A stretch of 64,000 bases of DNA from Bugula neritina (Eukaryota; Animalia; Bryozoa), in the NCBI GenBank assembly GCA_964035545.1, contig OZ037773.1, positions 4,989,751-5,053,750 on the forward strand, in the 5' to 3' direction. Positions 1,003-17,856 of this stretch are shown in pieces (position 1 is the first letter of the stretch; each line of letters starts with the position of its first letter). Made by a program: the position numbers and the translations under genes. Under the pieces are notes generated by a model that saw nothing but the letters and a program-made list of their open reading frames with translations, did not search any database and had not been told where the DNA came from.

Positions 1003-4000
1003 CTAGAGCATTTTCCGTATCATATAGTTTAGGATTCCGCCATTCCGGAAATATTCTAATTCTACTTCTGTGTCAAACCTGGCCAGCACTTGGAACTCCT
1101 TGCCAGAGTTTACCTGCAGAAGAAATATTCCACACCAAAATAAAGGAGGAGTTGTAGAGAAAACAATACACTGTGGATCTATAAAAAATATTTAAGTAAA
1201 TCTGAAAATTGCATTTAAACTTAAAAATATGTTTATATATTTAAGGCAGCAGCGTATGGGTACATAAAGATGGCAGCATTGAGTATATAACTTATCATGT
1301 TACTTTAAAATATAATATTACAACTATTAATTCCCATTATTTCAGAAATGTAATAATATAGGTTACGTAATACACCAGCACATTTAGTTTGTGGCTCATC
1401 TTAAATCAGAAGTTGTGAGATCGCAGGACAGGAATGAAACTAGGTGTTATTTCTCTTGAGTGTTAGCAGACAACACAAATTAGTTCGCGCAGCCATCTCT
1501 GTACTAGAACTATAATTAGCTCAGATCTTATTAGGATATTACCTTGACAGTGACCAGCTGACCAGTGGTCAAGTCTTTAGGAATGTGAATGGAGAACTGC
1601 TCTTTACCAGTTAGCCCGAGTGACTCTGCCGTGTCACCTGACTGATACTGGAGAGGGATAAGGCCCATCCCCACCAAGTTACCTGTGCAAAAGTAAAGAT
1701 TAGAGGCTATATAATCTCAGTTGTTCAATGTTGAAATTGTGAGCTATGCAAATTGTATTCTGACTAGGAATGCTATAATGAAAGCCGCTAATAAAATTAA
1801 TTCCGAGATAGGATAATTTGCAGTATTGCAGAGCATAAATCACATTATGCAATACTTTCAATGTGAAACAGCAAAAAGCGTTACATGTAACTGCATGAAT
1901 AAAAATCTCAGACTGAGAAAACTGTCAACTGTAAAACATTGACAGCTTGCAGCTCTACTTACTTCTGTGGATTCTCTCGTAACTCTCAGCAATAACAGCT
2001 CTCACACCCTGGAGGAAAGGACCCTTAGCTGCCCAGTCACGGCTACTTCCTGATCCGTACTCTTTGCCGGCGAGTATGATGACCTGATTGTCCTCCGACT
2101 TGTATCTCTCGGCAGCATCAAACACGTCCATCTGCAACACAACACACACTACTGCATACAGTACAGCATACAGTATACACTACACACTACTGTATACAGT
2201 ATACATTACAGCATACAGTATATACAATATACACTACACACTACAGTACATACAATATACACTACACACTACAGTACACAGTACACACTACGGTATACAG
2301 TACACACTACGGTATACAGTACACACTACGGTATACAGTACACACTACGGTATACAGTACACACTACGGTATACAGTACACACTACGGTATACAGTACAC
2401 ACTACATTATAGTACATACTACGGTATACAGTACACACTACGGTACACAGTACACACTACGGTACACAGTACACACTACGGTACACAGTACACACTACGG
2501 TACACAGTACACACTACGGTACACGGTACACAGTACACACTACGGTACACAGTACACACTACGGTACACAGTACACACTACGGTACACAGTACACACTAC
2601 GGTACACAGTACACACTACGGTACACAGTACACACTACGGTACACAGTACACACTACGGTACACAGTACACACTACGGTACACAGTACACACTACGGTAC
2701 ACAGTACACACTACGGTACACAGTACACACTACGGTACACAGTACACACTACGGTACACAGTACACAATACGGTACACAGTACACACTACGGTACACAGT
2801 ACACACTACGGTACACAGTACACACTACGGTACACAGTACACACTACGGTACACAGTACACACTACAGTACACAGTACACACTACACATTACAGTACACA
2901 GTACACACTACAGTACACACTACGGTATACAGTACACACTACAGTATACAGTACAGTACACAATACAGTGCATACTGCAGTTGACACTACATTATACACT
3001 ACGGTATACACTGCATGCTACAATATACACTAAACCAAACAGCATACATTATAGCATACACAACACACTCAACAGTATACACTATAGTCTATACTCTATA
3101 AACTATACAATCAGTATACAGTATAGACTACACTAAACTACACTAAAGCTGTTACACTAAAATACTACAGCTACTACAATACAGATACTACACTACAGCT
3201 ACTACAATACATATACTACAATACAGATACTACACTACATATACTACACTACAGCTACTACAATACATATACTACACTACATATACTAGACTACATATAC
3301 TACAATACAGCTACTACACTACATATACTACACTACATATACTACACTACATATACTACACTACATATACTACACTACATATACTACACTACATATACTA
3401 CACTACATATACTACACTACATATACTACACTACATATACTACAATACAGATACTACACTACATATACTACACTACATATACTACAATACAGCTACTACA
3501 CTACATATACTACACTACATATACTACACTACAGATACTACACTACATATACTACACTACATATATTACAATACAGCTACTACACTACATATACTACACT
3601 ACATATACTACACTACATATACTACACTACATATACTACAATACAGATACTACACTACATATACTACACTACATATACTACAATACAGCTACTACACTAC
3701 ATATACTACAATACAGATACTACAATACATATACTACACTACATATACTACACTACAGATACTACACTACATATACTACACTACATATACTACAATACAG
3801 ATACTACACTACATATACTACACTACATATACTACAATACAGCTACTACACTACATATACTACAATACAGATACTACAATACATATACTACACTACATAT
3901 ACTACACTACAGATACTACACTACATATACTACACTACATATACTGCATTACATAGTGACTACATACAATTGTCAATGTCTTATGAGACAGAAAAGAGCA

Positions 4001-7000
4001 GCTGTTATAAACGTAGATGTGACTATATCGATGCAATTCAGGTCAGGTGATTACCTCATCTCCACTGGGCACGTGCGTAGTCTTGGGGCCGGATTTAGAT
4101 GCCAGCTTGTTGACGAGTCTGATGTTAGCAAAGGTTCCTCTGGCCATGATGTCATCATTACCACGTCTCGCTCCGTATGAATTGAAATCTTTGGGAGTCA
4201 ATCTAAAGAGTAACCAATCATTCAATAAAATAAAATACCACAACAAAACTGCAGTAAAATCGTAGAATGAAGTGAAAAAGCATTTCTATCTCCAGACATA
4301 TAATAGCCGAGTTTAAAGTTTTATTAAATCGAAATTCAAGATCTAAATAATAGATCATATAACCATTATAGAGCAAATCCAGAGAGTTGATTGATATGGA
4401 AAAACATATGCCATGGCATTTTTATTGTCAGCTCCGGACCCCCAAAAATTGCAAATTATATTATAAAAATGAGGATTCAAATCAGTATTTAATTGGTATG
4501 CTTGCAACTAATTTTATATTTAAATTTACTAGATCAAATTTTATAAAGCAATCCTACTCCAGCTCAAAACTCAGACTACTCAATACATGATCAATCCACT
4601 ACTAGAGTATTCCACTAAAAAGAATACTTCACTAACTAATAGAGAGAAAGGTGCAGATTTGTAACATAATCAATAAGTAATGTAAAGTTGTTTGAAGTAC
4701 TAGGACATTGAGTTTTAACTGTTTACACAACATATTAGCAACCAACCCTTTACTAGCAAGATATCTGGCAGCAGGACTAGTCCTAGCGATACTTCCTGCA
4801 GGTGAAATGTGGTCAGTGGTAACAGAGTCTCCTAGATTGAGGAGAGCGTATGCATTCTCTACCTGCCTGAATCCTGGGGCATCTTTAGTCTAGGAGATAA
4901 AATACAGTCCTGTCACATACTTCTTCAAACAACTGAGGAAGCAAAAGAATTATTAACAGAAACTCAAACGACCCAACAGAATTATTCGCTAAGACTCTGT
5001 GGAATTTTATTGGTCAGATTTGAACCCCAAAATCACACAATTTATTTTATAATGCACATAATTCTATATTACATCATGTGATAGAAACATGCCAGTTTTT
5101 AATAAACAATAAACATGTTGAAAGAATTTTCAAAAAATATGAACTATGTTGAGTTTTCTGGAAGCAAAGGCACTTTGAAAACAATTGGCTGAAGCTTGAG
5201 ACACTATTCGTTCAGTAGGATGTGAAGAAAAGGATTTGCTCCTCACTAAAAACAGAGCCACACAACAACCTGCCAAACACATTACATCACCTTTCACTAA
5301 CAGCTTACATGACTATTTCACAGCTGATAATGTCAAATAAAATTATCAGCTAAATAGATCATGTGACCCAGCTTTATCAGCCTTGTCTACCATGTGAATG
5401 GTGCTAAGTACTAAACAGATAGCACCCACTAACTACAGCAAGAATACATGAATTGTCAAAGTTATTTGTTAAATTTCTCACACAATTATTCAATGCATTT
5501 CTATTTTAGCACCGAAACAATGCAAGGCATTACTGTAGGGTCTAAATTTGTGTTGCTTTTCAGACTTTAAGACTAAATTTTAATTATAAATCATTACACA
5601 CAATGAAAGTTACTATATTATATTAATAACTTGTTAAAAATTGTGTTGTTATTCAGAAATTAAGACTAAGTTGAAAATTACACATCATTCTGTCTGGAGA
5701 AAGTGACTATATATTCACAACTTCTGCGTTCTATGAACATATTGCAATGTCCTCAAGTAAACTAGTACTACCCACTAGTGTGTTTGATACAGAGACAAGA
5801 ACCAAGGCTATTACCATGTTGTCAAAGAAAGGCGGGCTCTTGATGTAAGTTGAGGAGACGTCCCATGGATACAGCTGACTAGACGGCACGGCTAGGCTGT
5901 TCCACTTCTCATTCCCAGCCTAAAGGTAATATAACAAGAATTATTATAATATAATATAATAATATATATCAATAATTAACTACCACAGTATTGTATTAAA
6001 TATTTAGCTGGAGAGCTCAAAGTAATATTGAAAACGTCTGTTATTAAGAAAAGATATCAAAAGGGCAAACTTTATTTTCAAGAGTTGTCTTCTACTGCCA
6101 CTTAATTCAGAACATGCACCAGTATCATTACTTATTATAATCCTTGCTTTATGCAAGTTTGTCAAATAACCAGCAAGACTCAATTGCTGAAGTCCCAGAC
6201 CATTTCAATTTATAAATAAAACTGACGAGTTATAAGGTTTGCTGTATCTGACAAGGAAACTATTGATATGAATGCGTTATTATAGAGGAACAAACTATGT
6301 AATCAATACACATATTATATAAGAATTTAAATTAGCCTCTTCAAGTCTTTTTGTACAGAGTTCTCCTAGGTAAAGAAGATAACTCTTAAAAGTTTAATAA
6401 TTGAATCACAACTTTTTAATGAAAAATGGCTAGCTGGGAGAACTGCTAGCTGGAAGAAGAGCTAGCTGGGAGAAATACTAGCTGAGACAAGAGCAAGCTG
6501 TGACAAGAGCTAGATGAGATATTCCTGTGACAATGTAGACTCACCGTGATAGAGCCGTATACTTTGTTATAAAGAGCTGGCACTATGACTCTCTTCTCTA
6601 CGTCCTGAATCTGCTCTCTCGTAGGCCAGATATCTCTCAGGAAGACTGGCTTACCATCTGGACCCTCACCTAATACCATTGAAAGACAATCGTGGAAAAT
6701 TGGTTACAGTTACACAAGCCTATTTTATATTGTCCGTATTACTATTTTGTATATAGTATTACTGTATATATAATACAATTATGGTAAAATGTGCTTTAGT
6801 ACTACTATACTACACATAGTAATAATATATACATATTATTACTATGTATACCATAGTTCAACTATTTATAAATTTACTATCTATAATAGTATAACTATTT
6901 AGTATGAACTATGTATATATAGCTATACAATATACATAGTAATACTGTATACACAATGGTATAGTTACACGACAATATACTTTATATATAGTAATACTAC

Positions 7001-10000
7001 ATCATACATAATAATATAGGATAGTATTGTTACACTAGACTACAATATATGCTGCATACACAATATAATATCATAGTATAGTATGGTTACACCACACTAC
7101 AATATATAGTAACACTATATACAGTATACTGTAGTACCTAGAGGAGTTTTCTCAAAGTCTATAGAGACAGTTCCAGCAAGAGCATAGGCTACGACTAGGA
7201 GAGGAGAGGCTAGGTAATTAGCTCTAGTCAAGGGGTGAATACGTCCCTCAAAGTTTCTATTACCAGACAATACTCCACAGGTTACCAAATCACCTGAACA
7301 CAACAGAGAATATCATGGGCACATCTTTACAAATATAATTGTTGACTGCAACCAGCTGATCATCTAATTCTTAGCTATGTGGTGCAGATAATGAGATGAC
7401 TACTATCCAATAGTTTTTTCCCTAAACAAAATGAAGCAACAAATCAAAGCATATATAGAAAAGTATTTTCAAAACAACTGATTAATGAGCATTAAGTGAT
7501 AAAACATGATATTTTCAGTATAATACAACTGATACATCACACTGGGGAAAGGGGTTGCTAGAAAGACAAACCTTTCTCAATAGCCTCGCTGACAGGATCG
7601 GGCAGAGGGCCGGAGTTGCCTATGCACGTCATACAGCCGTACCCAACAATGTCAAACCTACAACAGACGGTTATCAGACTATATAGCTACAAAACACTGT
7701 GTGCGGCGCTACTTAATCTCACACACATGTACATGAATTGAAAGGCTTGGGAGCAGTTTCAAAGATTTAGTTAAAAAGACGGTTTCTAAACTGCATGTGG
7801 GTTTGTGAGCTATAAAACTGTTTATCATCAACAAGCTTGTCCCTGCTTATGTTTAACACAAACAATTCGCTACGATCTTTCTAACCAACATTTTAGTATA
7901 TCCACATGAGTGAGGAACCTATTTTAGACAAACAGACAGAGCTAGAAACTAAACCTAGATAAACACGACATCACATTTAATTTGCAAAATAAATATGCCT
8001 CTAATTAATAATTCACGGATATGATATGTTTAGTTTATAATTTAGACTATTGGTGAACTTAAAATATTTTATCAAATTGAATGAGTGAAGTTCTGGAAAA
8101 TACAGACGTAACATTTTGTCCAATAGGAACAGAGATCATCCAATAGGTTCATCACTTGTAATTTGAGAAAACAAAATCGAAACTAGCTCGATTTAGCTAC
8201 ACAAATTTCACCAGTATTTTTGCCAACTGTCACAAAACGAAAAAGAAGCTCCACAATTAAACTTCAACTTTAAACTCAAGAAAAATATTATTAAAAACTA
8301 ACGGTGCACAAACTACTAGAATATTGTGAATAAAGTACCCGAGTTTCTCCATGAAGGGAGTGACTCCACTTTCATTGAGGTAGTAAGTTACCACCCCGCT
8401 TCCGGGACTCAACGAGGTCTTGATATAAGGCTTCACCCCTAAACCCTTCTCTACAGCATTCTTAGCCATCAAACCTACAACCAACATATGAATACTGTAC
8501 GAGTTATTTGATATATATATAAACACCACCCAACCCTGACCAACTATTATGAGGGAAGGCTAAACAGAAGGCCTTTCTTGGCATTTACAATCTAACAAGG
8601 TCATTTAGCTGAGCTTGCAACAGACAAGTTACTGCAGATGTGACAGACTATTGTATCATAGCATTCTCATCTATACTTACACACTTCTACAGGAACCTAA
8701 AACCAGTGCTTTTATTAACAGAAAAGCTAGAATAGTACAACTCCATTACCAGTTGTCACAGAAGTTATGTTAAACATTAGAAATACACACACTCGAGAAT
8801 CTATAGATACTTGATGTAAAGGGCAGACAACTACACAAGAACACACTACATTTACATCAAGATATCTACACAAACTCTGTACAATAATCCCATAGACCGA
8901 CCTGCGCCCAACATAACCGACGGGTTGCTGGTGTTGGTGCAACTAGTAATGGCAGCTATGACAACGTCTCCGTGTGCCAGAGTATACTCCTGTCCCTCGT
9001 ACACAAATGGCACTCTTGTAGACTGCTTTTCTGATGGTATAGCAAACCCCTGTAAAAACAAAAGAGTGTAGTAAACCCCTATGATAACGAGGAGTGGAGT
9101 GAACCCCCTATGATAACAAGGAGTGTAGTGAACCCCCTATGACAACAAGGGGTGTATGAATCCCCTCCAAATCTCTTACAACAAAAAATGTAGCCAGCTC
9201 AGTAGAGATGAAAATAGCACATACCTGCAATAAAAAGGCCTTAAGGAGTCGTGAAAAACTAATCAAATGGTAGAAAATATTTAGATCAGATGTGTACAAA
9301 CAATAGCATAGCTATGTTGTTAACTTGCTTGGTAGGAACTAGATTTGTTACTCAAACATTGTGAGGGTCACTAGGAAAGCCCCAACACCACCGTAGCCTG
9401 AGGCCCATACGCTGTGGAGCTTACTGGAGACATTGCCTTACCTTGAAGCCGATCTTATTGTTGAGGCAGCTGTTAAAGTCTGACATCATTTCCGACACTG
9501 GCACCTTGTCGTGGGGCCGTTTGGGTCCAGAGCAGCATGGGACAACAGAAGACAGGTCCAACTCTACTACCTGCAACAGTACCTTCCTATTGTATGTATT
9601 CTATACTGTACAGTACCTACAGTAGCTCTTACTAGGACTATTCTATGAGTGATGTGTATTCAATCAGAAAATAGATAGCAATACCTCACAGATTGCTGAA
9701 ACGTTTCAGCTTCGATTCTACTTCATAGTTGTATCATAATAAAATTTTACAGTAGGGAGCTTTAATAATATGTTCAGTAAGATGTTCTCATATTTCTTAG
9801 GAATAGTTTAAGAGGCTAAAATCTTGAAAAAACATTATCTAAGAATGCTATCCCCTAAACTAAATACAAGTAAAACTCAACAGTTTCATCTCTTTTTTAT
9901 GTAGAAATTATATGTTTCAAACATTGATGTTATTTCATATTAAGAGAATAATTTTCCACTGAGGAATAAAACATCCAGCTAATTGTAATATCTACAGAGA

Positions 10001-13000
10001 GCCCACCTTGCTGAACACCGGGTCCTCTCCACTATTGGTGTAGTCTCTAAACATACGGTTAGCTTTCAGATACGCCTCAATATACGCCACTTTCTCCGCG
10101 TCTCTACCTGCAGCGTATATACACAGACTACGCTGTGACATCATACCAGGTCTAATAGTCAGCTTACCACAGAAGAGTACAGAAAGTGAGGCAGAGAGAA
10201 AGTTGCACAATTACAGCATGTAGCAGAGTGGACAGGACTTCATGTATCTTAGAGTTACGGGCAGGCGACCAGCCAGCCCCCAATTGAACTTAGAGAAATC
10301 AGATTCAATGCAACTGTGCAACAAGTCAATAGCAAAGTTTGGAAATTTTTTCACCATAGCATGTATATAGCTGCTACTTATAGTATTGAAAAAATTGACA
10401 GACCTGTCTGGTTGAGGTAGGAGATGGTGGCAGTGTCAGGAGGGAAGTATCCTACGGTAGCCCCGTACTCTGGACACATGTTGGAGATGGTGGCTCTATC
10501 AGCCAATGAGAGAGCGGCTACACCGGGGCCAAAGAACTCCACAAACTTTCCCACAACTCCGATCTGTCGCAAGTGCTACATCAACAAACATATTCAGTAT
10601 AGACCTTCAGTTAAACCTACTGTTTCAAACTCACATGTTTTCGGTAGAAATTCAAATCAACTTACCTACACAATAACTAAACAATGATTACAAACACTTC
10701 TATACATAAGCTTATATAAGCATTTTAGACTTTGGTTACAATGCAAGTTTTCCAACAAAAAATGCATTTTGGCTACACGAGAGCACAACTTCAAAAATAA
10801 TAAACAATTAAATGTTTAGAACAATATTTAGTCAAATATAAAGTTCAATCAATTTAAAAGAATAAAGCTCATTGATTTGAATTTAGCTGTAAATCCAAAA
10901 AAATTAGCCCGATTACCACAGAGTAGAACGTAGACTGGGTACCAGAGAACTAACCTTGGTGATGGTGAGCACGACATCTGTGGAGGTCGACATGGGGTCA
11001 AGGTTACCGTGTATCCTGTAACCTATGACCTCTGGCAGCACCATGGAAATAGCCTGTCCCAACATGACAGCCTCCGCCTCAATACCTGTTAGCAAAACAT
11101 AACATCAGTTAGGGAAGGTGAAAACTTGTCCTTGTGAGAAACCCCTGATGGAAAGGGTCTTTTTTAAATTGGGCTAAGGACTTATTCATATGTGACAAAG
11201 GAGCAATTAATTATAAATGGATACTCTTCTTAACATCACCAATGACCTTTGTCAGGGTTGGAACCCATGACTTTGTGTTTACTAGGCAAACACTCTAACC
11301 CCTAGACCAGGAGTGCTGAACTTGATGGGCATAAAGTGATATTAAAAAAAACATCAGTAAAAAGTCAAGATTTGTTCACAAATTCGATATAAAGTTTCTA
11401 CACAATGTAAATATAAAGAATATAGAACAAATGAATACCATAGAACAAAGATAATATAAAAAACATGAAAATATGCAACACATTAGACTAAGACTCATTC
11501 TTACACTTTGTGAGACTCCAACCCTTGGAATGTATGCCAGTCACAAGCTATAATTAACTTCATAAAGTTACATTGTAAACATCAATTTCACAAACATATA
11601 ACATGTTTAACTTATCTTATTAGCTGGACTGTTGGAGTGACACCCAGCAAATTAAAACCGGTTTCGATTTACTAAATATACAAATTACATAGACATACAC
11701 AGTGGTATAGTATAGTATAGTATAGACATACACAGTGGTATAGAAGGATCTGTTTATACAAAACATATTATTAAGGTGTGTATAACACTCGAGTACAAAA
11801 CCTTATAGTGGCTTTCTAGAAGATTCCAACATGATGGGAATTCTCATCAACAACTAAAAACCTCTCATATCTATTCTAGAAGGTTCCAAACACATGACTC
11901 ACCGCCAACGCCCCAACCAACGACACCGAGGCCATTTATCATAGTAGTGTGGGAGTCAGTGCCCACTAAGCTGTCTGGATACAGCCAATCATCTTCACAG
12001 AACACCAGGCGAGCCAGGTACTCCAAATTCACCTGCAAAGTTTCAACACCATTGCTATGATAGCGGCTATCAGCACATTTGTAGGTTACAGGGTTCTGCC
12101 AGGTATTGTTTCTCACCATATTCAAAACTTATTGCCATGATGTTTCAACTTGTTTTTCATTATTTTGCTCAAAAATTAACTAATATTTTAGGAAGTGAAG
12201 ATTATTCTCATTAAATGAGATCCACAATATCTTTCTCGACTGTAAAAAGGTATATATACTGTACACTGTAACATTATAAACATAGCAAAGACCATTTTAT
12301 AACAGTTTAGGAGTTACTTCCACATCATATTAATTATACAGTAGTTATGTAGAAGCAGTCCAGATAAATGCTAAAAATATACATCTTTAGCCTATGCAGC
12401 TGCATTTAATACTAAACATATTTTATGGATCATCACTTTTTTACTTAAGAAAAAAATCCGAATTATTTCAATCTACTTTCCATAAATATGTTGTCAGAAA
12501 AATTCTTTCTATGTTAAAGGAGGCCAAAGGCGTTGTACAGACACATGTGAAGCTGAAGTATACTGTTTTCAGCCCATTATAGAGTAGAATATATATTTAG
12601 ACTGTACAGAAAGCTGTGCTGAGTAGAACTAATAAGTCTTATGCCCAAAAGAGATACAAAAAGATGATGGTGGTAGGCAAACCTCTGATAGAGCACCCAG
12701 CAGGTTTGTATTGAAACACAGTGCAGTCAGGTATGCTGGTATGAAGGCAACTTATTATAACAGGTATCATAGTTACACAGGAAACGGGTTTGAGAGACCG
12801 GTATATCCGTTCATATGTGACATCAAATCAGCATACATTTCATACTAGGCCAGCAACAGCCTCGACTCTGTATTTCAGTACAGCAGTGAATGCAAAATAA
12901 TTTACTCTCACACAAGTTTATAATCACCATTCCTGTGAGAACCCCTGATAGAAAGGATTTTTGTTAAAGTGGGCTGAGAACTTATTCATATGAGGCACAG

Positions 13001-16000
13001 GAGCAATTATAACTAGATGCCCTTCCTAATATCACCAATGGCCTTTACTGGGGTTTGAACCCATGACTTGGTGTTTGCTAAGCTAAACACTGTAAACCCT
13101 AGACTACAGCTGCTCCCTGCAACTTACTTACTGACTTAGAGCTTACTGAAAATAATTACAACTATAGGAGAAACACAAGTGTGGCTGCAGAGTAAAGTAA
13201 AGCTGTGAAAATTTACCTGATGAACAATACCACTGCCAGGGGGAACAATTAACATATTCTTGAAAGCCTTGGCTCCCCACTTGAGAAAGTTAAACCGCTC
13301 CTTATTTCTTTCAAACTCCATGTCTTGGTTCTGCTTCAAGGCATCGGCACTACAGTACAAATTAAACAGTTGATTAGAACTAAATCTACCATAGAAACCA
13401 GAGAAACTTGTGCGTTTAGCAGCAGACGTTCTGTAAGCAGCTGCACATTTGCTTTTACAAATGTGTGTTAACAAAATTAATGCTGGATATCAAATATCCA
13501 AAGCAGAGAAATAGTAAAAGTGGATCTTCCATCGTTGTGTACCAACCCGACAGATCTTTCCTTGTGAAACGGGCACAGGGGATCGCAGACCTTGTTCTCA
13601 TTACCGGGCATCCGACAGCAGACTTCCCGACAGCACCCGGCAGCACCCTTACACGGTGTTCTAGGCCGCTGTCGGCTGGGTGAACCTTTCGGTGAAAGAC
13701 GAACATTGTCTAGTGTGTTTTGAGTATTTTCTAAGTTGCTTGCAGTCAGTCTGAGTAAACTAGAGTCTGAGTGAGACTGAGTGATGAGATCTTTACATGA
13801 CTGTCTCTCACATTCCCCCGAGTCACTTCTCTCACAAAGCGGGGAGGGGTACTTGCTGTTACTTTTATATTGAGGCCGTAGCCTTATAGGACTTTGTGTA
13901 GGGTCGATATTTGATAGGCGAGGTCTATTTGGAGATTGTCTCCCCGGTGCTGAGTAGTTTTTAGCTCTGTGTTGTGGACTGTTGCTAGACTGACCACTTC
14001 CATGGTTTCGCGTTGAGTTGAGCAAACTACAACGAGAAACCATACAAAGTGGTCAGTTAGTGCACAGCTCACACACAGCTCTGTCAAGTTTCTCTTCAAA
14101 AAGTGCCAGCTTTGTGGAAATTCAAGAACTTTTATTGTAAAAAACTAGCTACTGAATTGAAATTATGAAACAATAACAAGAATGCACCTGGTGAATTCAG
14201 CTAACTCAAAACACTTCCCTTAATAGAGACTTTGCATTGGTTATGCAGAGAACCTGTCAATGTTACATCCTTAAAGAATCAATTTTGAAAACAATTACAG
14301 CAATAAACTATATTTAAAACTATGTTGCTGAAAATCACACATTACGGCACAGATGAGAGAGAAGGTATTTGTGCCAACTACATGAATCATTTTAGATGAA
14401 AACTGTAAACTAGGAAAATCCTGTTCCTAGCATATACTTAAATAGTATTAGATCTCGTGGTGAATATCCATCTCCAGAGGGTAAAGTGCACCTCCCCTCT
14501 CGTAAGAGATTCAAATTAGCACACAACTATTATTCATGAATGCATGCGCTTTGCTACTATTTGATTCTATTGAGAGGTTGCATTCAGTTGTTAAACCTAT
14601 ATTATTTAGACATTGGACGAAGCCACGTGAATAATCTGTGCAAAATATGCGTACGTGACCTGTTAAGAGTGATAAACTACGTTGTCTCAGCTGATATGCC
14701 AGGCATGGACAGTCCACTTATCCACAGATAAACGCATCACACACAACCTGTAAGCCCCTGTAAGCCGGTAACCCCAGGCCCAAAGCTACTCCAGGTGATT
14801 CTGGGCCCATGATATGCAGTATTAGCACTGGAGTGTATACTAACAACAGGGTATCTAAATCATACTTGCGAGCAGTGAGAAATTGAGAAGTTATGTTCTC
14901 AAAATAAATTCAACCCATGCCCAAAACCAAAATCTATTACAAAAATTAAAGACCTTAAGCTATTAAAAATTTTTCCACTACTACTTCTAAGTGTCACCTG
15001 GGTGACATCAGCTATCATGTAGGCAATGGGTTGTTAGCATTGTTTAACTGCTACCCTAGTACTACTTTTATAATTAAAATAATATGTATAACAGTGGAGA
15101 CTCAAAAAGTTTGAAACTTACGGGATTGCAATACTAACTTCCCCAGTTACATGTAATTGCATCATTAGACTGGAAAATATAAAGTTACCAGTGGCCTTTA
15201 AACAAGCAACAAAAGCCGACACATTTAATATAAGCAGAAGATGAACAAATTGTCTTACTACACTCATACAATATAACTTAAATTATTTGCGATAAAAAAG
15301 AAGGAAAAGGTGTTTTACTATACTGACACTTACTGGTGGAGTGTTAAGAGGTGGTGGATTGTGGGAGTGAGAGGGGGACTATATTTTACTATACTAGCAC
15401 TTTTGACAAAATAATTTTTCAAATTGTTTAGTTGAAGTACATATACTAAAACATCTAACCCCTAGGAAATTTGTAAAAAAACATTTGTGTAAATTTGCCA
15501 ACAGGTATACTAGAGTATAGCCCTAACTTCTTACCTGCGGGCTACATCCACTTGCACTGAGTGATCTATAACCAGGTCAGCTGGACAAACAGGATTAATC
15601 TTTTCAGGGTCACCCCCCAATCTTTTAACAGCGTCCCTCATTGCTGCGAAGTCCACAACTGCTGGAACTCCACTAAAAGAGAAATATGCATCAAATATAT
15701 ATCAGTATCTAGAACGAGGCTTTAAATATTTTAAAATTTTCATTTCGATAAAAAATCGCTGGCTTTGGATAGAAAACTACCTTTCATGTTCCGTTGCACT
15801 AAAAGCATGTTGTGAGTATAAAGTAAAAATAAAAGGAAAAAAACAGTTACTACAGTAATTGTTTCAGCCTGATGCATAACATAATATTTTACAACTACGG
15901 ATGGAAAAACCACATAAATAGTCAAAAAGGTGATGATGAATTATTTTCAATTCAAGGATTTGAAATAACATAAATCACCACCGATTTGACTTCATTTTAC

Positions 16001-17856
16001 CAACTAACCTAATATAACAATACAAAAAACTTAAGCACGCAAGAGCTGGGCCTAAGTATTTTTACTTTAGGTACTTAGAAAAATTGAGCAAATTTGTTAA
16101 CATAATGACTTGACTCGCTCAGCTATTTGATTCAACTTGGATATTTTAACTGGATTGCTACGAATTTAGGCAAGTAAAATTCTGAAACAGAAAAATTACT
16201 ACAAAATTTGTATTATAGACATACGCAAATATAACTAAAAATTAAAAATATTGACTGGCATCACAGGAGTATAGGTTAATTTAAATAAACTTAAATGAAT
16301 TTAAGTAGTTACTTGAATTGACTTGGATATGACTTAAATTTTTCTCCACCTGAACCATGACTTGACAAAAAACTCAAGTTCATCCTAACTCTGAGCTCTG
16401 ACACTGGTAGGCAAATTAATAATGTTAAAAGTCAAGTGTGAGGTGAGTGTAGCTAGTACAGCTAGCTAGCATAAAAGTGTAGCTAAAACAGGAGTGTAGC
16501 CAGTGTAGGGGTAGCTAGTACAAGAGTGTAGTTAGTAAAAGGGTTTAATTATTATTATGAGTGTAACAATTACAAGCGCAACTAATAAAAACATGTTGGC
16601 AACAGTAGTGTTCAGTGTTAGTAGCAGTAAGCCCAGTACTACTTACGTAAAGCCCAGTACTACTTACGTAAAGCCAAGTACTACTTACGTAAAGCCAAGT
16701 ACTACTTACGTAAAGTCTTGTAAAATGACCCTGCTAGGTTTGAAGGGCACCTCTGTACTGTTACTCTGATTTTTCTCCCAATCCAATATCTTCTTAACGT
16801 CATCTTCCTTTACAAGAAAGTTGTCACAGTTTCTCACAGCTGACTCTAGCAGCACTCGTACAGAATATGGTAGCTTATCTGAGAAAATGAAATAGAAAAA
16901 TAAAATAAGAACTCATAAATAAAATAAAATAAGAAAAAAAATAGTACTCAATTCAAGTTCACAAAGTACTAGTAATATTAATTTCAGAGTCTGAAAAAAT
17001 AAAATGAAATTTTTGACAAAAAATTGGCAACTTTGTCGTAACAATCGCTTAGAAATAACACGCTGCAGGCAAAAAAGAGAAATATTTTTCACATGACAGA
17101 CCCTACAGTAGCGACATTACACATTCACATCACTATAGAACACTCACCATATCTATCATCAGAGAGTTTAGTTAGGTTAAAGAATTTATATTCCTTGCCA
17201 TTACTGGTGAGCGAATCCTCGCACGTCTTATATGGATTATTACCACCTAAACCAATAAGAGGGAGAAACTAGCTGCATTATGCTCATTGTATTTAATCAT
17301 GCTGTTTTGTAAAATGAAGTGATAATGAACAGAGTATAATGTACTTGCAAAAGTTATCATAATAATATCCATAGACCATAGGGCTACAAGTACATGGAGT
17401 TATATTGCTAGTCATACTCTGCTAATACTCACACACTTAATAACTATATAAGTGTGTGAATATTAGACTCAGTAATTGGAACTTACAGGTGTAAGACTAA
17501 GTGTATAACTATAAGTATTAGTATAACATTGACTATAATTTAAACTATAAATATAACTTATAAAATAAGTTATATAAAACCAGGTGACTTATAAGTTATA
17601 GTTATTAACTTATAGTAACTATAAGTTTATAATAGTTAGTGTTACAGTTTGAGTTACACTTACTGAGTCTGAAACCCTAACTCATACTGATGCTAGTCAT
17701 AGATGATAGTGATACTGATATTGAAAACCAATAGCCATAGATAGGTCAACAATAAGAGCTATTAGTATTGAATTTACAAAATTCTAAATTTCAAGTCTTG
17801 AAAATCAAAATAAAATCACAATGACAATGTATCGTTAAAAATAACCCACCTGACAT
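1003..17856 (-). CDS. ACO1: Cytosolic aconitate hydratase / iron regulatory protein 1, 891 aa without the optional exon. Exons: 17850-17856, 17148-17246, 16710-16878, 15535-15672, [13547-14026 optional], 13217-13349, 11903-12032, 10955-11085, 10404-10575, 10007-10107, 9442-9570, 8902-9049, 8339-8474, 7572-7657, 7138-7293, 6545-6669, 5815-5919, 4747-4889, 4055-4202, 1963-2131, 1543-1682, 1003-1113
   Basis: All junctions are GT-AG and phase-compatible, totalling 2676 nt. Motifs: [51 protein letters not shown], Fe-S ligands in [12 protein letters not shown] and [45 protein letters not shown], and C-terminal [12 protein letters not shown]. Confidence 0.97.
2270..2945. repeat. 19-bp minisatellite (ACACAGTACACACTACGGT)n in an ACO1 intron
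   Basis: Period of 19 read directly from the sequence; it generates the spurious 298-aa repetitive ORF 2088..2984. Confidence 0.95.
3160..3950. repeat. 14-bp minisatellite (CTACATATACTACA, with ATACAGATACTACA variants)n
   Basis: Period of 14 read directly; adjacent to the 19-bp array in the same intron. Confidence 0.95.
11128..11317 (-). mobile_element. tRNA-derived SINE copy
   Basis: Reverse complement matches the copies at 28346, 36769 and 57031, including the A box, B box, body and ATCAGGGGTTTCTCACA 3' region. Confidence 0.85.
12911..13117 (-). mobile_element. tRNA-derived SINE copy (full length)
   Basis: Reverse complement reads GGGAGCAGCTGTAGTCTAGGG...CATGGGTTCAAACCCCAGTAAAGGCCATTGGTGAT...TATAAACTTGTG. 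Confidence 0.88.
13547..14026 (-). CDS. Putative cassette exon of ACO1 encoding a 160-aa Ser/Pro/Cys-rich IRP2-like insert
   Basis: Acceptor ctaactgac...gtttctcgttgtag|T and donor GG|GTTGGT (the same donor sequence is used at 4746). The exon is 480 nt, phase 2-2, stop-free and in frame between VDVARS and ADALKQNQ; it ends [14 protein letters not shown]...[13 protein letters not shown]. Confidence 0.8.
16629..16712. repeat. 4 x 21-bp tandem repeat spanning the ACO1 exon 3 splice donor
   Basis: Unit AAGCC(C/A)AGTACTACTTACGTA; on the minus strand each unit contains TTTAC|GTAAGT. Confidence 0.95.

Follow-up and report, generated by a model that had tools for sequence, protein, structure and literature searches.

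Reviews treat the 73-aa insert ('73d') of vertebrate IRP2 (IREB2) as a feature of IRP2 alone, with a function that is largely unknown (PMC2854138, PMC3048577), and invertebrates are described as being without IRP2 (PMC8947174, PMC7034838). Can a single invertebrate gene encode proteins both with and without this insert? The question is raised by a 64,000-nt stretch of DNA from the bryozoan Bugula neritina (GenBank assembly GCA_964035545.1, contig OZ037773.1, positions 4,989,751 to 5,053,750), hereafter called the window, which holds an IRP1/cytosolic aconitase gene on its minus strand. An earlier reading of the letters of the window, made without database searches (the sequence-only reading), had proposed that one intron of this gene contains a skippable IRP2-like exon. 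From the evidence below we consider it highly probable that this exon is a real alternative coding cassette, and a bryozoan-expanded ortholog of an ancient metazoan exon that is the IRP2 insert in vertebrates.

The cassette exon and the IRP2 insert

The intron between VDVARS and ADALKQNQ contains a stop-free exon of 480 nt and phase 2-2, as the sequence-only reading had described it, with an acceptor (ttgtag|) at 14026 and a donor (|gttggt) at 13547. The length is divisible by three, the borders are GT-AG, and RNA joints were found on both sides. A full gene model with GT-AG introns reproduced the two proposed protein lengths of 891 aa (cassette skipped) and 1051 aa (cassette included). The codons split by the exon borders are AG|T, giving Ser at the 5' side, and GG|T, giving Gly at the 3' side. 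The 159 full codons between them encode 10 Cys, 16 Pro and seven Ser/Thr-Pro ([ST]P) sites, with PLCPFH at codons 149-154; the cysteines, SP sites and PLCPFH had all been correctly read at the outset. By sequence, Cys-Pro-Phe-His is a heme-regulatory-type motif. GC content is 49% in the cassette and 39% in the surrounding intron, and at the base composition of the intron the chance of 160 open codons is ~3e-5 per frame position.

The insertion point lies in domain 1, between the DLVIDHSxQVD and xDxLxKNQ-EFERN segments, before ADALKQNQ and four residues upstream of where Ser138 stands in human IRP1. To compare this region with known structures, we searched residues 100-480 of the GenBank protein KAF6028362.1 ('ACO1 [Bugula neritina]', 1100 aa; P0007) against PDB with phmmer. 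The best matches were rabbit and human IRP1 (3sn2, 2b3x; E~1e-107), and their alignments stop at ...VDVAR and resume at ADALKQ, breaking exactly at query residues 87/249. In the same search, the alignment with human IRP2 (6vcd_A) enters the insert from both sides. Human IRP2 carries the motifs NAPNPGGG, KLSPLK, PCRGQTTCRGSC and LCPFH; the motifs that the sequence-only reading had named thus occur on 6vcd chain A in the same order, with its KLSPVK reading KLSPLK. The C-terminal segment of the cassette pairs with human IRP2 KLSPLKVQPKKLPCRGQTT-CRGSCD...LCPFHLQPVPEP, and the most conserved block of the cassette (Table 1) aligned with PCRGQTT-CRGSC...LCPFH. In the human insert PNPGGG occupies residues 7-12, and CPFH is followed by the same number of residues as in invertebrate inserts.

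A profile of the bryozoan cassette retrieved only four short genomic open reading frame (ORF) calls from 1.84 billion representative proteins. These four (P0002-P0005), which come from other assemblies, are probably bryozoan sequences, and their taxon assignment is putative; one of the sample labels starts with 'BRYA'. They are 42-56% identical overall to the cassette and share with it a 16-residue segment and a C-terminal block in which 29 of 33 columns are invariant. All four open with ..PNPGGG, which falls at insert residues 7-12 as in human IRP2; in the window NHGSG takes its place. The blocks that are found only in these four sequences and the window (13795-13908) are missing from the ~50-aa inserts of other phyla. 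The cassette alone matched nothing by phmmer or in a Pfam search, and in a word-indexed search with the P0007 cassette none of the matches at E<=10 was a full-length protein, since a 181-aa ORF stands in there for the 1100-aa GenBank protein and the inserts of other phyla are too divergent. This 181-aa ORF call is 94% identical to the cassette and clusters with KAF6028362.1, which holds the cassette at residues 187-347. The inclusion form is therefore already in GenBank, and the exon is present in RefSeq X1 isoforms as well, which settles a point that the sequence-only reading had left open.

Inserts of this kind are widespread. Our homolog set comprised the 120 best-scoring animal IRP proteins from a search with the region around the cassette, and 62 of these have an insert of at least 20 residues at exactly the cassette site. 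CP[F/Y]H stands at one fixed distance from the insert end in 54 of the 62, and [DN]PGG occurs within the first 15 insert residues in 46. The CPFH or CPYH ends exactly seven residues before the 3' splice site of the exon. Carriers of CP[F/Y]H inserts include bivalves, gastropods, a chiton, an annelid, ticks, spiders, a scorpion, a millipede, crustaceans including Daphnia, echinoderms, a hemichordate, amphioxus, lamprey and two cnidarians. The eight inserts without the motif belong to an octopus isoform and to vertebrate ACO1 models, and the latter look like intron read-through in sequence. Insert length ranges from 29 to 295 residues, with a hypervariable middle. The sequence-only reading was thus right that this gene has an IRP2-like exon, which is real; the exon is not special to this genome, however, but a pan-metazoan one that has expanded threefold in the bryozoan.

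Several individual inserts deserve mention. The octopus isoform (P0099) has kept PNPGGG and lost CPFH. In decapods, Daphnia, Aplysia and a barnacle (P0051, P0058, P0071, P0067, P0096) the insert has grown to 170-295 low-complexity residues and keeps the ...CPFH + 7 residue end, along with a DPGGG start in the two decapods; judged from their sequences, these expansions are independent. A lamprey prediction (P0069, Petromyzon marinus 'cytoplasmic aconitate hydratase-like isoform X2', 962 aa) has an IRP2-type insert ending LCPFHLQPLPGP and retains the Fe-S cysteine motifs and GSGSSRDW alongside it. The lamprey protein may represent a stage on the way from the ancestral gene to an aconitase-dead IRP2.

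RefSeq X1/X2 isoform pairs, which are predicted models, indicate that the exon is alternative in other invertebrates. The insert is the only difference between the X3 and X4 predictions of Amphiura filiformis, and S. purpuratus X1 (951 aa) differs from X2 (895 aa) by the insert and also by seven substitutions from one assembly version to the other. The junction residue shifts as a phase-2 cassette predicts. Insert-less isoforms are also recorded for the bryozoan Watersipora, Lingula, Priapulus, Ptychodera and Lineus. These isoform pairs, together with the inserts of molluscs, annelids, arthropods, hemichordates, amphioxus and cnidarians, bear out the earlier suggestion that the insert predates the vertebrate duplication as an alternative exon.

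A real, alternative exon might nonetheless resemble the IRP2 insert by convergence, if Cys/Pro-rich low-complexity exons had been recruited independently into a permissive surface loop. Several results weigh against homology and lend this explanation some substance. A profile made of invertebrate and cnidarian inserts only, with the flanks removed (A2), ranked human IRP2 residues 140-207 first among 177,635 PDB sequences, at a weak E of 0.32, and the bryozoan profile alone (A1) had no match in PDB. The middle of the insert is hypervariable over its 29 to 295 residues, and the copy in the window is without PNPGGG. On the human side, the comparison of exons covers the existence of an exon of its own for the IRP2 insert (PMC3048577). 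Single sequence scores are thus modest, and the case rests on position, motif geometry and intermediate taxa. On these, however, the agreement is close. Intron position and split-codon behaviour are alike, the hexamer PNPGGG lies at the same offset in human IRP2 and in protostomes, and the distance from CP[FY]H to the exon end is identical in all 54 inserts that have the motif, which range from cnidarians to lamprey, as well as in human. A graded series also leads through amphioxus and lamprey (lamprey LCPFHLQPLPGP, human LCPFHLQPVPEP), and the bryozoan and A2 profiles align to each other by hhalign over the CPFH block (E=1.6e-5, probability 79%). The shared position, motif order and spacing, with the graded series, make convergence very unlikely in our judgement, and there is a strong case from sequence comparison that the cassette is orthologous to the IRP2 insert, as the sequence-only reading had held from the position and the motif order.

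Since insert-bearing proteins with a shared site and geometry occur from cnidarians to lamprey, the exon is, on this phylogenetic spread, at least as old as the cnidarian-bilaterian ancestor. The ancestral metazoan exon would have lain in the same intron, with a typical PNPGGG start, Cys pairs and CP[F/Y]H seven residues from the 3' splice site, and a single ancestral gene would have produced IRP1-like and IRP2-like isoforms through splicing. After duplication, the exon would have been lost from ACO1 and fixed as the constitutive 73-aa insert of IREB2. Such a partitioning of an ancestral alternative exon between ACO1 and IREB2 is strongly supported by the sequence comparisons. It resembles isoform subfunctionalisation after duplication, in which one ancestral gene both includes and skips, whereas ACO1 never includes and IREB2 always does; a caveat is the lamprey protein, which combines the insert with intact aconitase residues.

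The bryozoan exon can be set beside several known systems. It is like the 73d insert of IRP2 in its insertion point in domain 1 (between DHSxQxD..x and xxxLxKNQ), in being a separate, Cys/Pro-rich exon with a product predicted to be unstructured, in the order (P)NPGGG, LSP.K, PC[KR]G..C..C and LCPFH, and in the distance from CPFH to the end. It differs in having 160 residues rather than 73, with extra bryozoan-type blocks, in being alternative where the IRP2 insert is constitutive, and in the decay of PNPGGG to NHGSG; its host protein keeps all the residues for aconitase activity and the Fe-S cluster, which are lost in IRP2. The 'cytoplasmic aconitate hydratase isoform X1' predictions of Magallana gigas, S. 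purpuratus, Branchiostoma lanceolatum and Nematostella vectensis, and the ark-clam protein SbIRP-1, have the orthologous exon at the same site. In the X1 predictions it is likewise an alternative exon, paired with an isoform that lacks the insert, and the host gene is single-copy and aconitase-competent. Most of the X1 inserts have 29-65 residues with a C-x2-C ... LP.LD..CPFH core, whereas the bryozoan insert, with its 10 Cys, exceeds them about threefold in length.

The ark-clam IRP1 cDNA (SbIRP-1, 942 aa), which was cloned and expressed, contains the segment (PMC8947174). Its authors described Ser138-Gly189 as 'absent in vertebrate IRP1s' and, separately, reported IRP2 to be missing from the genome; the paper draws no connection between the segment and IRP2 (PMC8947174). 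In the full-text literature, with subscription-only papers outside our search, we found no paper that describes the IRP2 insert as an alternative exon of invertebrate IRP1 genes. While the sequences were already in GenBank and RefSeq, recognition of the homology and of the alternative splicing thus appears to be new. If the exon is alternative in a single IRP gene from cnidarians to amphioxus, IRP1 and IRP2 would be a clean instance of isoform partitioning after duplication, and the absolutely conserved CP[F/Y]H at its fixed spacing would mark the functionally essential part of the insert. Oyster, sea urchin and Nematostella would then offer natural pairs of proteins with and without the insert in an aconitase-competent background.

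Alternative splicing and coding constraint

To find out whether the cassette is used, we aligned Logan contigs of four RNA-type runs from four studies (P1-P4) to positions 13100-15800. The runs include 'organism A' and a 'symbiont metagenome' RNA-Seq library, and their RNA nature is a guess; an RNA origin is credible because intron-less joints at canonical sites are the product of spliced RNA. The inclusion joint 15535>14026 was present in runs X2, X4 and X6, the inclusion joint 13547>13349 in X4 and X6, and the skip joint 15535>13349 in X1 and X4, each with GT..AG borders on the gene strand. All three junctions named by the sequence-only reading were therefore recovered, and both splice forms exist. 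Full contigs of both came from X4, in which record 20 (546 nt) spans the whole cassette and both flanks at a k-mer depth of 5.8 and record 22 (615 nt) is the skipped form at a depth of 52.7. The skipped form is probably commoner than the included form in the X4 sample; contig depth is a poor measure that we use for this rough statement only and not as an inclusion level. The skip joint in X1 and X4 also separates the gene from IRP2, where inclusion is constitutive. Constitutive inclusion was the observation that the sequence-only reading had named as fatal to a switch; likewise, of the two absences that it had said would reduce the exon to a chance frame, neither holds, since joints of the included form occur in X2, X4 and X6 and inserts are conserved across phyla. 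A further weight against our reading is the nature of these data: RNA by guess, assembled into Logan contigs that give no levels or regulation, and drawn from a sibling lineage ~7% divergent.

RNA-type contigs also cover parts of intron A between 14374 and 15374 (for example 14503-14784 and 14637-14915). These show separate joints at non-canonical sites (14429>14499, 14915>15044) as well as loose ends, and are probably repeat or transposon sequence or reads of other loci.

Comparison with the genomic locus of the sibling lineage (L005) bears on whether the cassette codes for protein. Across its 480 nt the cassette has no indel columns and 34 mismatches, of which codon position 3 accounts for 24 (binomial p=1e-5), and nine of 159 residues are changed. 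The neighbouring introns are 78-80% identical with gaps counted: for intron A (1508 nt) the alignment shows 189 mismatches along with 157 gap columns (78.5%), and for intron B (197 nt) 29 gap columns. From the third-position bias, the lack of indels and the conserved C-terminal block, the reading frame of the cassette is clearly kept by selection.

This pattern is difficult to reconcile with the possibility that inclusion is low-level splicing noise, or intron-derived exonisation without a protein function, such that only the 891-aa IRP1 matters. The ~9x greater k-mer depth of the skipped form in the one run with both forms as full contigs would agree with noise, as would the weak donor (GTTGGT). 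AlphaFold2 on the cassette alignment found no fold either; its mean predicted local distance difference test (pLDDT) score of 46.6 means that there is no usable model, which again does our reading no favours, and while such a score fits a disordered ligand-dependent loop it proves nothing. Noise would not, however, be expected to leave third-position bias and an indel-free exon between indel-riddled introns, to conserve 29 of 33 columns of the Cys block among sequences that are 42-56% identical overall, or to retain the exon across phyla over a span of more than 500 million years. The cloning and expression of the ark-clam cDNA with the segment (PMC8947174) speaks against noise as well, and we rate this explanation as slightly less probable even than convergence. 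That the cassette is a chance open frame in an intron and its junction contigs artefacts or DNA would suit runs that are RNA by guess only and the partial coverage of intronic 14374-15374 in run X2, but this is ruled out by the three exact GT..AG joints that recur across independent studies, the L005 comparison and the codon-position bias, and agrees poorly with the small probability of such an open frame and with GenBank and RefSeq gene models that contain the exon.

Possible function of the insert

The human IRP2 peptide TPILCPFHL binds heme in vitro with a dissociation constant (KD) of ~0.8 uM (PMC10377097). The bryozoan tetrapeptide is the CPFH of the IRP2 heme regulatory motif, and it shares with the heme regulatory (CP) motifs of ALAS1, HRI, PER2 and IRP2 the order of Cys-Pro, hydrophobic residue and His. 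A difference is that the invertebrate inserts are known from sequence alone, and their extra conserved Cys could instead ligate Zn or an Fe-S cluster. Because the motif and its spacing are the sole invariant features across ~20 classes of animals, we infer that CP[F/Y]H is the functional core of the insert.

The insert could be a disordered, Cys/His-rich loop that binds heme or metal through the invariant CPFH, as seen in vitro for the human peptide, and such a loop could tune Fe-S cluster stability, iron-responsive element (IRE) binding or turnover of the long isoform. The location is suggestive in two respects. In the ark-clam IRP, DLVIDHSIQV and a second segment are putative RNA-binding regions (PMC8947174), and the cassette insert falls between the two. 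In addition, a phosphomimetic mutation at human IRP1 Ser138 abolishes aconitase function (PMC4184891). At the position aligned with Ser138 the window encodes Ala (in the ADA of ADALKQ, 13340-13348, minus strand), as is reported for several other invertebrate IRPs (PMC4184891).

By analogy with these systems, heme sensing specifically is possible, although we would not call it probable. A little more doubtful is the broader proposal that the insert is a pre-bilaterian heme/redox-sensing module toggled by splicing, whose inclusion would yield an aconitase/IRP1 regulated by heme or oxidation via CPFH and the cysteines near Ser138. The splice-controlled heme/iron-sensing switch of the sequence-only reading is pure conjecture. 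A sensing role of the insert is not established even in vertebrates, because its proposed role as an iron-dependent degradation signal of IRP2 has been experimentally rejected (PMC3048577; PMC2267205), and this tells against the reading as well. If the insert were such a sensing module, invertebrates would long have had an IRP2-like regulatory arm, and the function of the human insert could be resolved by comparison.

Host gene, copy number and source lineage

We built the gene model from a tblastn search of P0007 on the window, followed by splice-site refinement and assembly, and all 21 introns are GT-AG in the assembled model (Table 1). The predicted 7-nt first coding exon was placed by frame, phase and the 891/1051 aa lengths; its ATG was the sole ATG found there that joins in phase to the acceptor tttag|GTGGTAAT at 17246. 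On this model, KAF6028362.1 begins 53 residues too early via intron read-through (window 17148-17856, minus strand).

Table 1. Coordinates of the gene, the cassette exon and related features in the window
Feature	Position	Strand	Description
IRP1/cytosolic aconitase gene	1003..17856	minus	22 coding exons counting the cassette; ATG 17856-17854, stop TAG 1005-1003
Exon with GSGSSRDW	1963..2131	minus	aconitase active-site Ser/Arg
Exon with second and third Fe-S cluster cysteines	7572..7657	minus	
Exon with SCTNTSNP	8902..9049	minus	first Fe-S cluster cysteine
Constitutive downstream exon	13217..13349	minus	starts T +; skip joint 13349|15535
Intron B	13350..13546	minus	197 nt; joint 13349|13547
Alternative cassette exon	13547..14026	minus	480 nt, phase 2-2; IRP2-type Cys/Pro-rich insert, 160 residues
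Most conserved block	13558..13656	minus	33 residues, 29/33 columns invariant in five bryozoan-type sequences; includes CPFH at 13564-13575
Blocks only in five bryozoan-type sequences	13795..13908	minus	invariant columns of alignment A1; sub-blocks: 10-residue block 13879-13908, SPLCER..SG.CER.SC 13795-13845
NHGSG, degenerate PNPGGG	13993..14007	minus	alignment A1 and human sequence
Intron A	14027..15534	minus	1508 nt, spliced out in inclusion form; joint 14026|15535, CT..AC on plus strand
Constitutive upstream exon	15535..15672	minus	ends + AG; RNA-type contigs cover the exon and join from 15535
Predicted first coding exon	17850..17856	minus	7 nt; ATG TCA G then gtgggt; N-terminus MSGGNNPYK

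The encoded protein belongs to IRP1/ACO1: it is of the aconitase A type, and the three Fe-S cluster cysteines and GSGSSRDW with the catalytic Ser/Arg are kept in both isoforms, as had been noticed from the sequence. Pfam PF00330/PF00694 are recorded for its homologs. The loss of Fe-S ligands and active-site residues that marks an IREB2 ortholog, and leaves it with RNA binding only, is not seen in the bryozoan gene, and because these residues are retained the gene is, by its sequence, a pro-ortholog of IRP1 and IRP2 both and not an IRP2.

The 216-Mb assembly has one other strong aconitase-A match, on contig C312. This locus (C312:61401-63696, L008:902-3197) is an intronless aconitase-like gene of ~35% GC that is ~60% identical to the bryozoan protein, with in-frame TAA/TAG at conserved Glu positions (NL*YLARV, GGI*AEAVMLG), a code which we take to be of the peritrich-ciliate type. 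We considered it as an IRP2 paralog or a retrocopy and rejected both, given the absence of introns, the ~60% identity and the use of TAA/TAG as sense codons. These features suggest that C312 is a contig of another organism, an epibiont contamination in the assembly. Since C312 belongs to another organism, IRP1/cytosolic aconitase is single-copy in the assembly and there is no IRP2 paralog.

We measured divergence from the lineage of KAF6028362.1 on window 11802-17281 against the sibling locus L005. Exons differ by 3-7%, and large introns by 8-15% in substitutions and 16-22% with gaps. Because of this 3-7% exon and 16-22% large-intron divergence, the source of the window is, on sequence, a sibling within the B. 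neritina complex or a very close congener. Exon and intron divergence of this kind between two genomes labelled Bugula neritina is consistent with cryptic species in the B. neritina complex.

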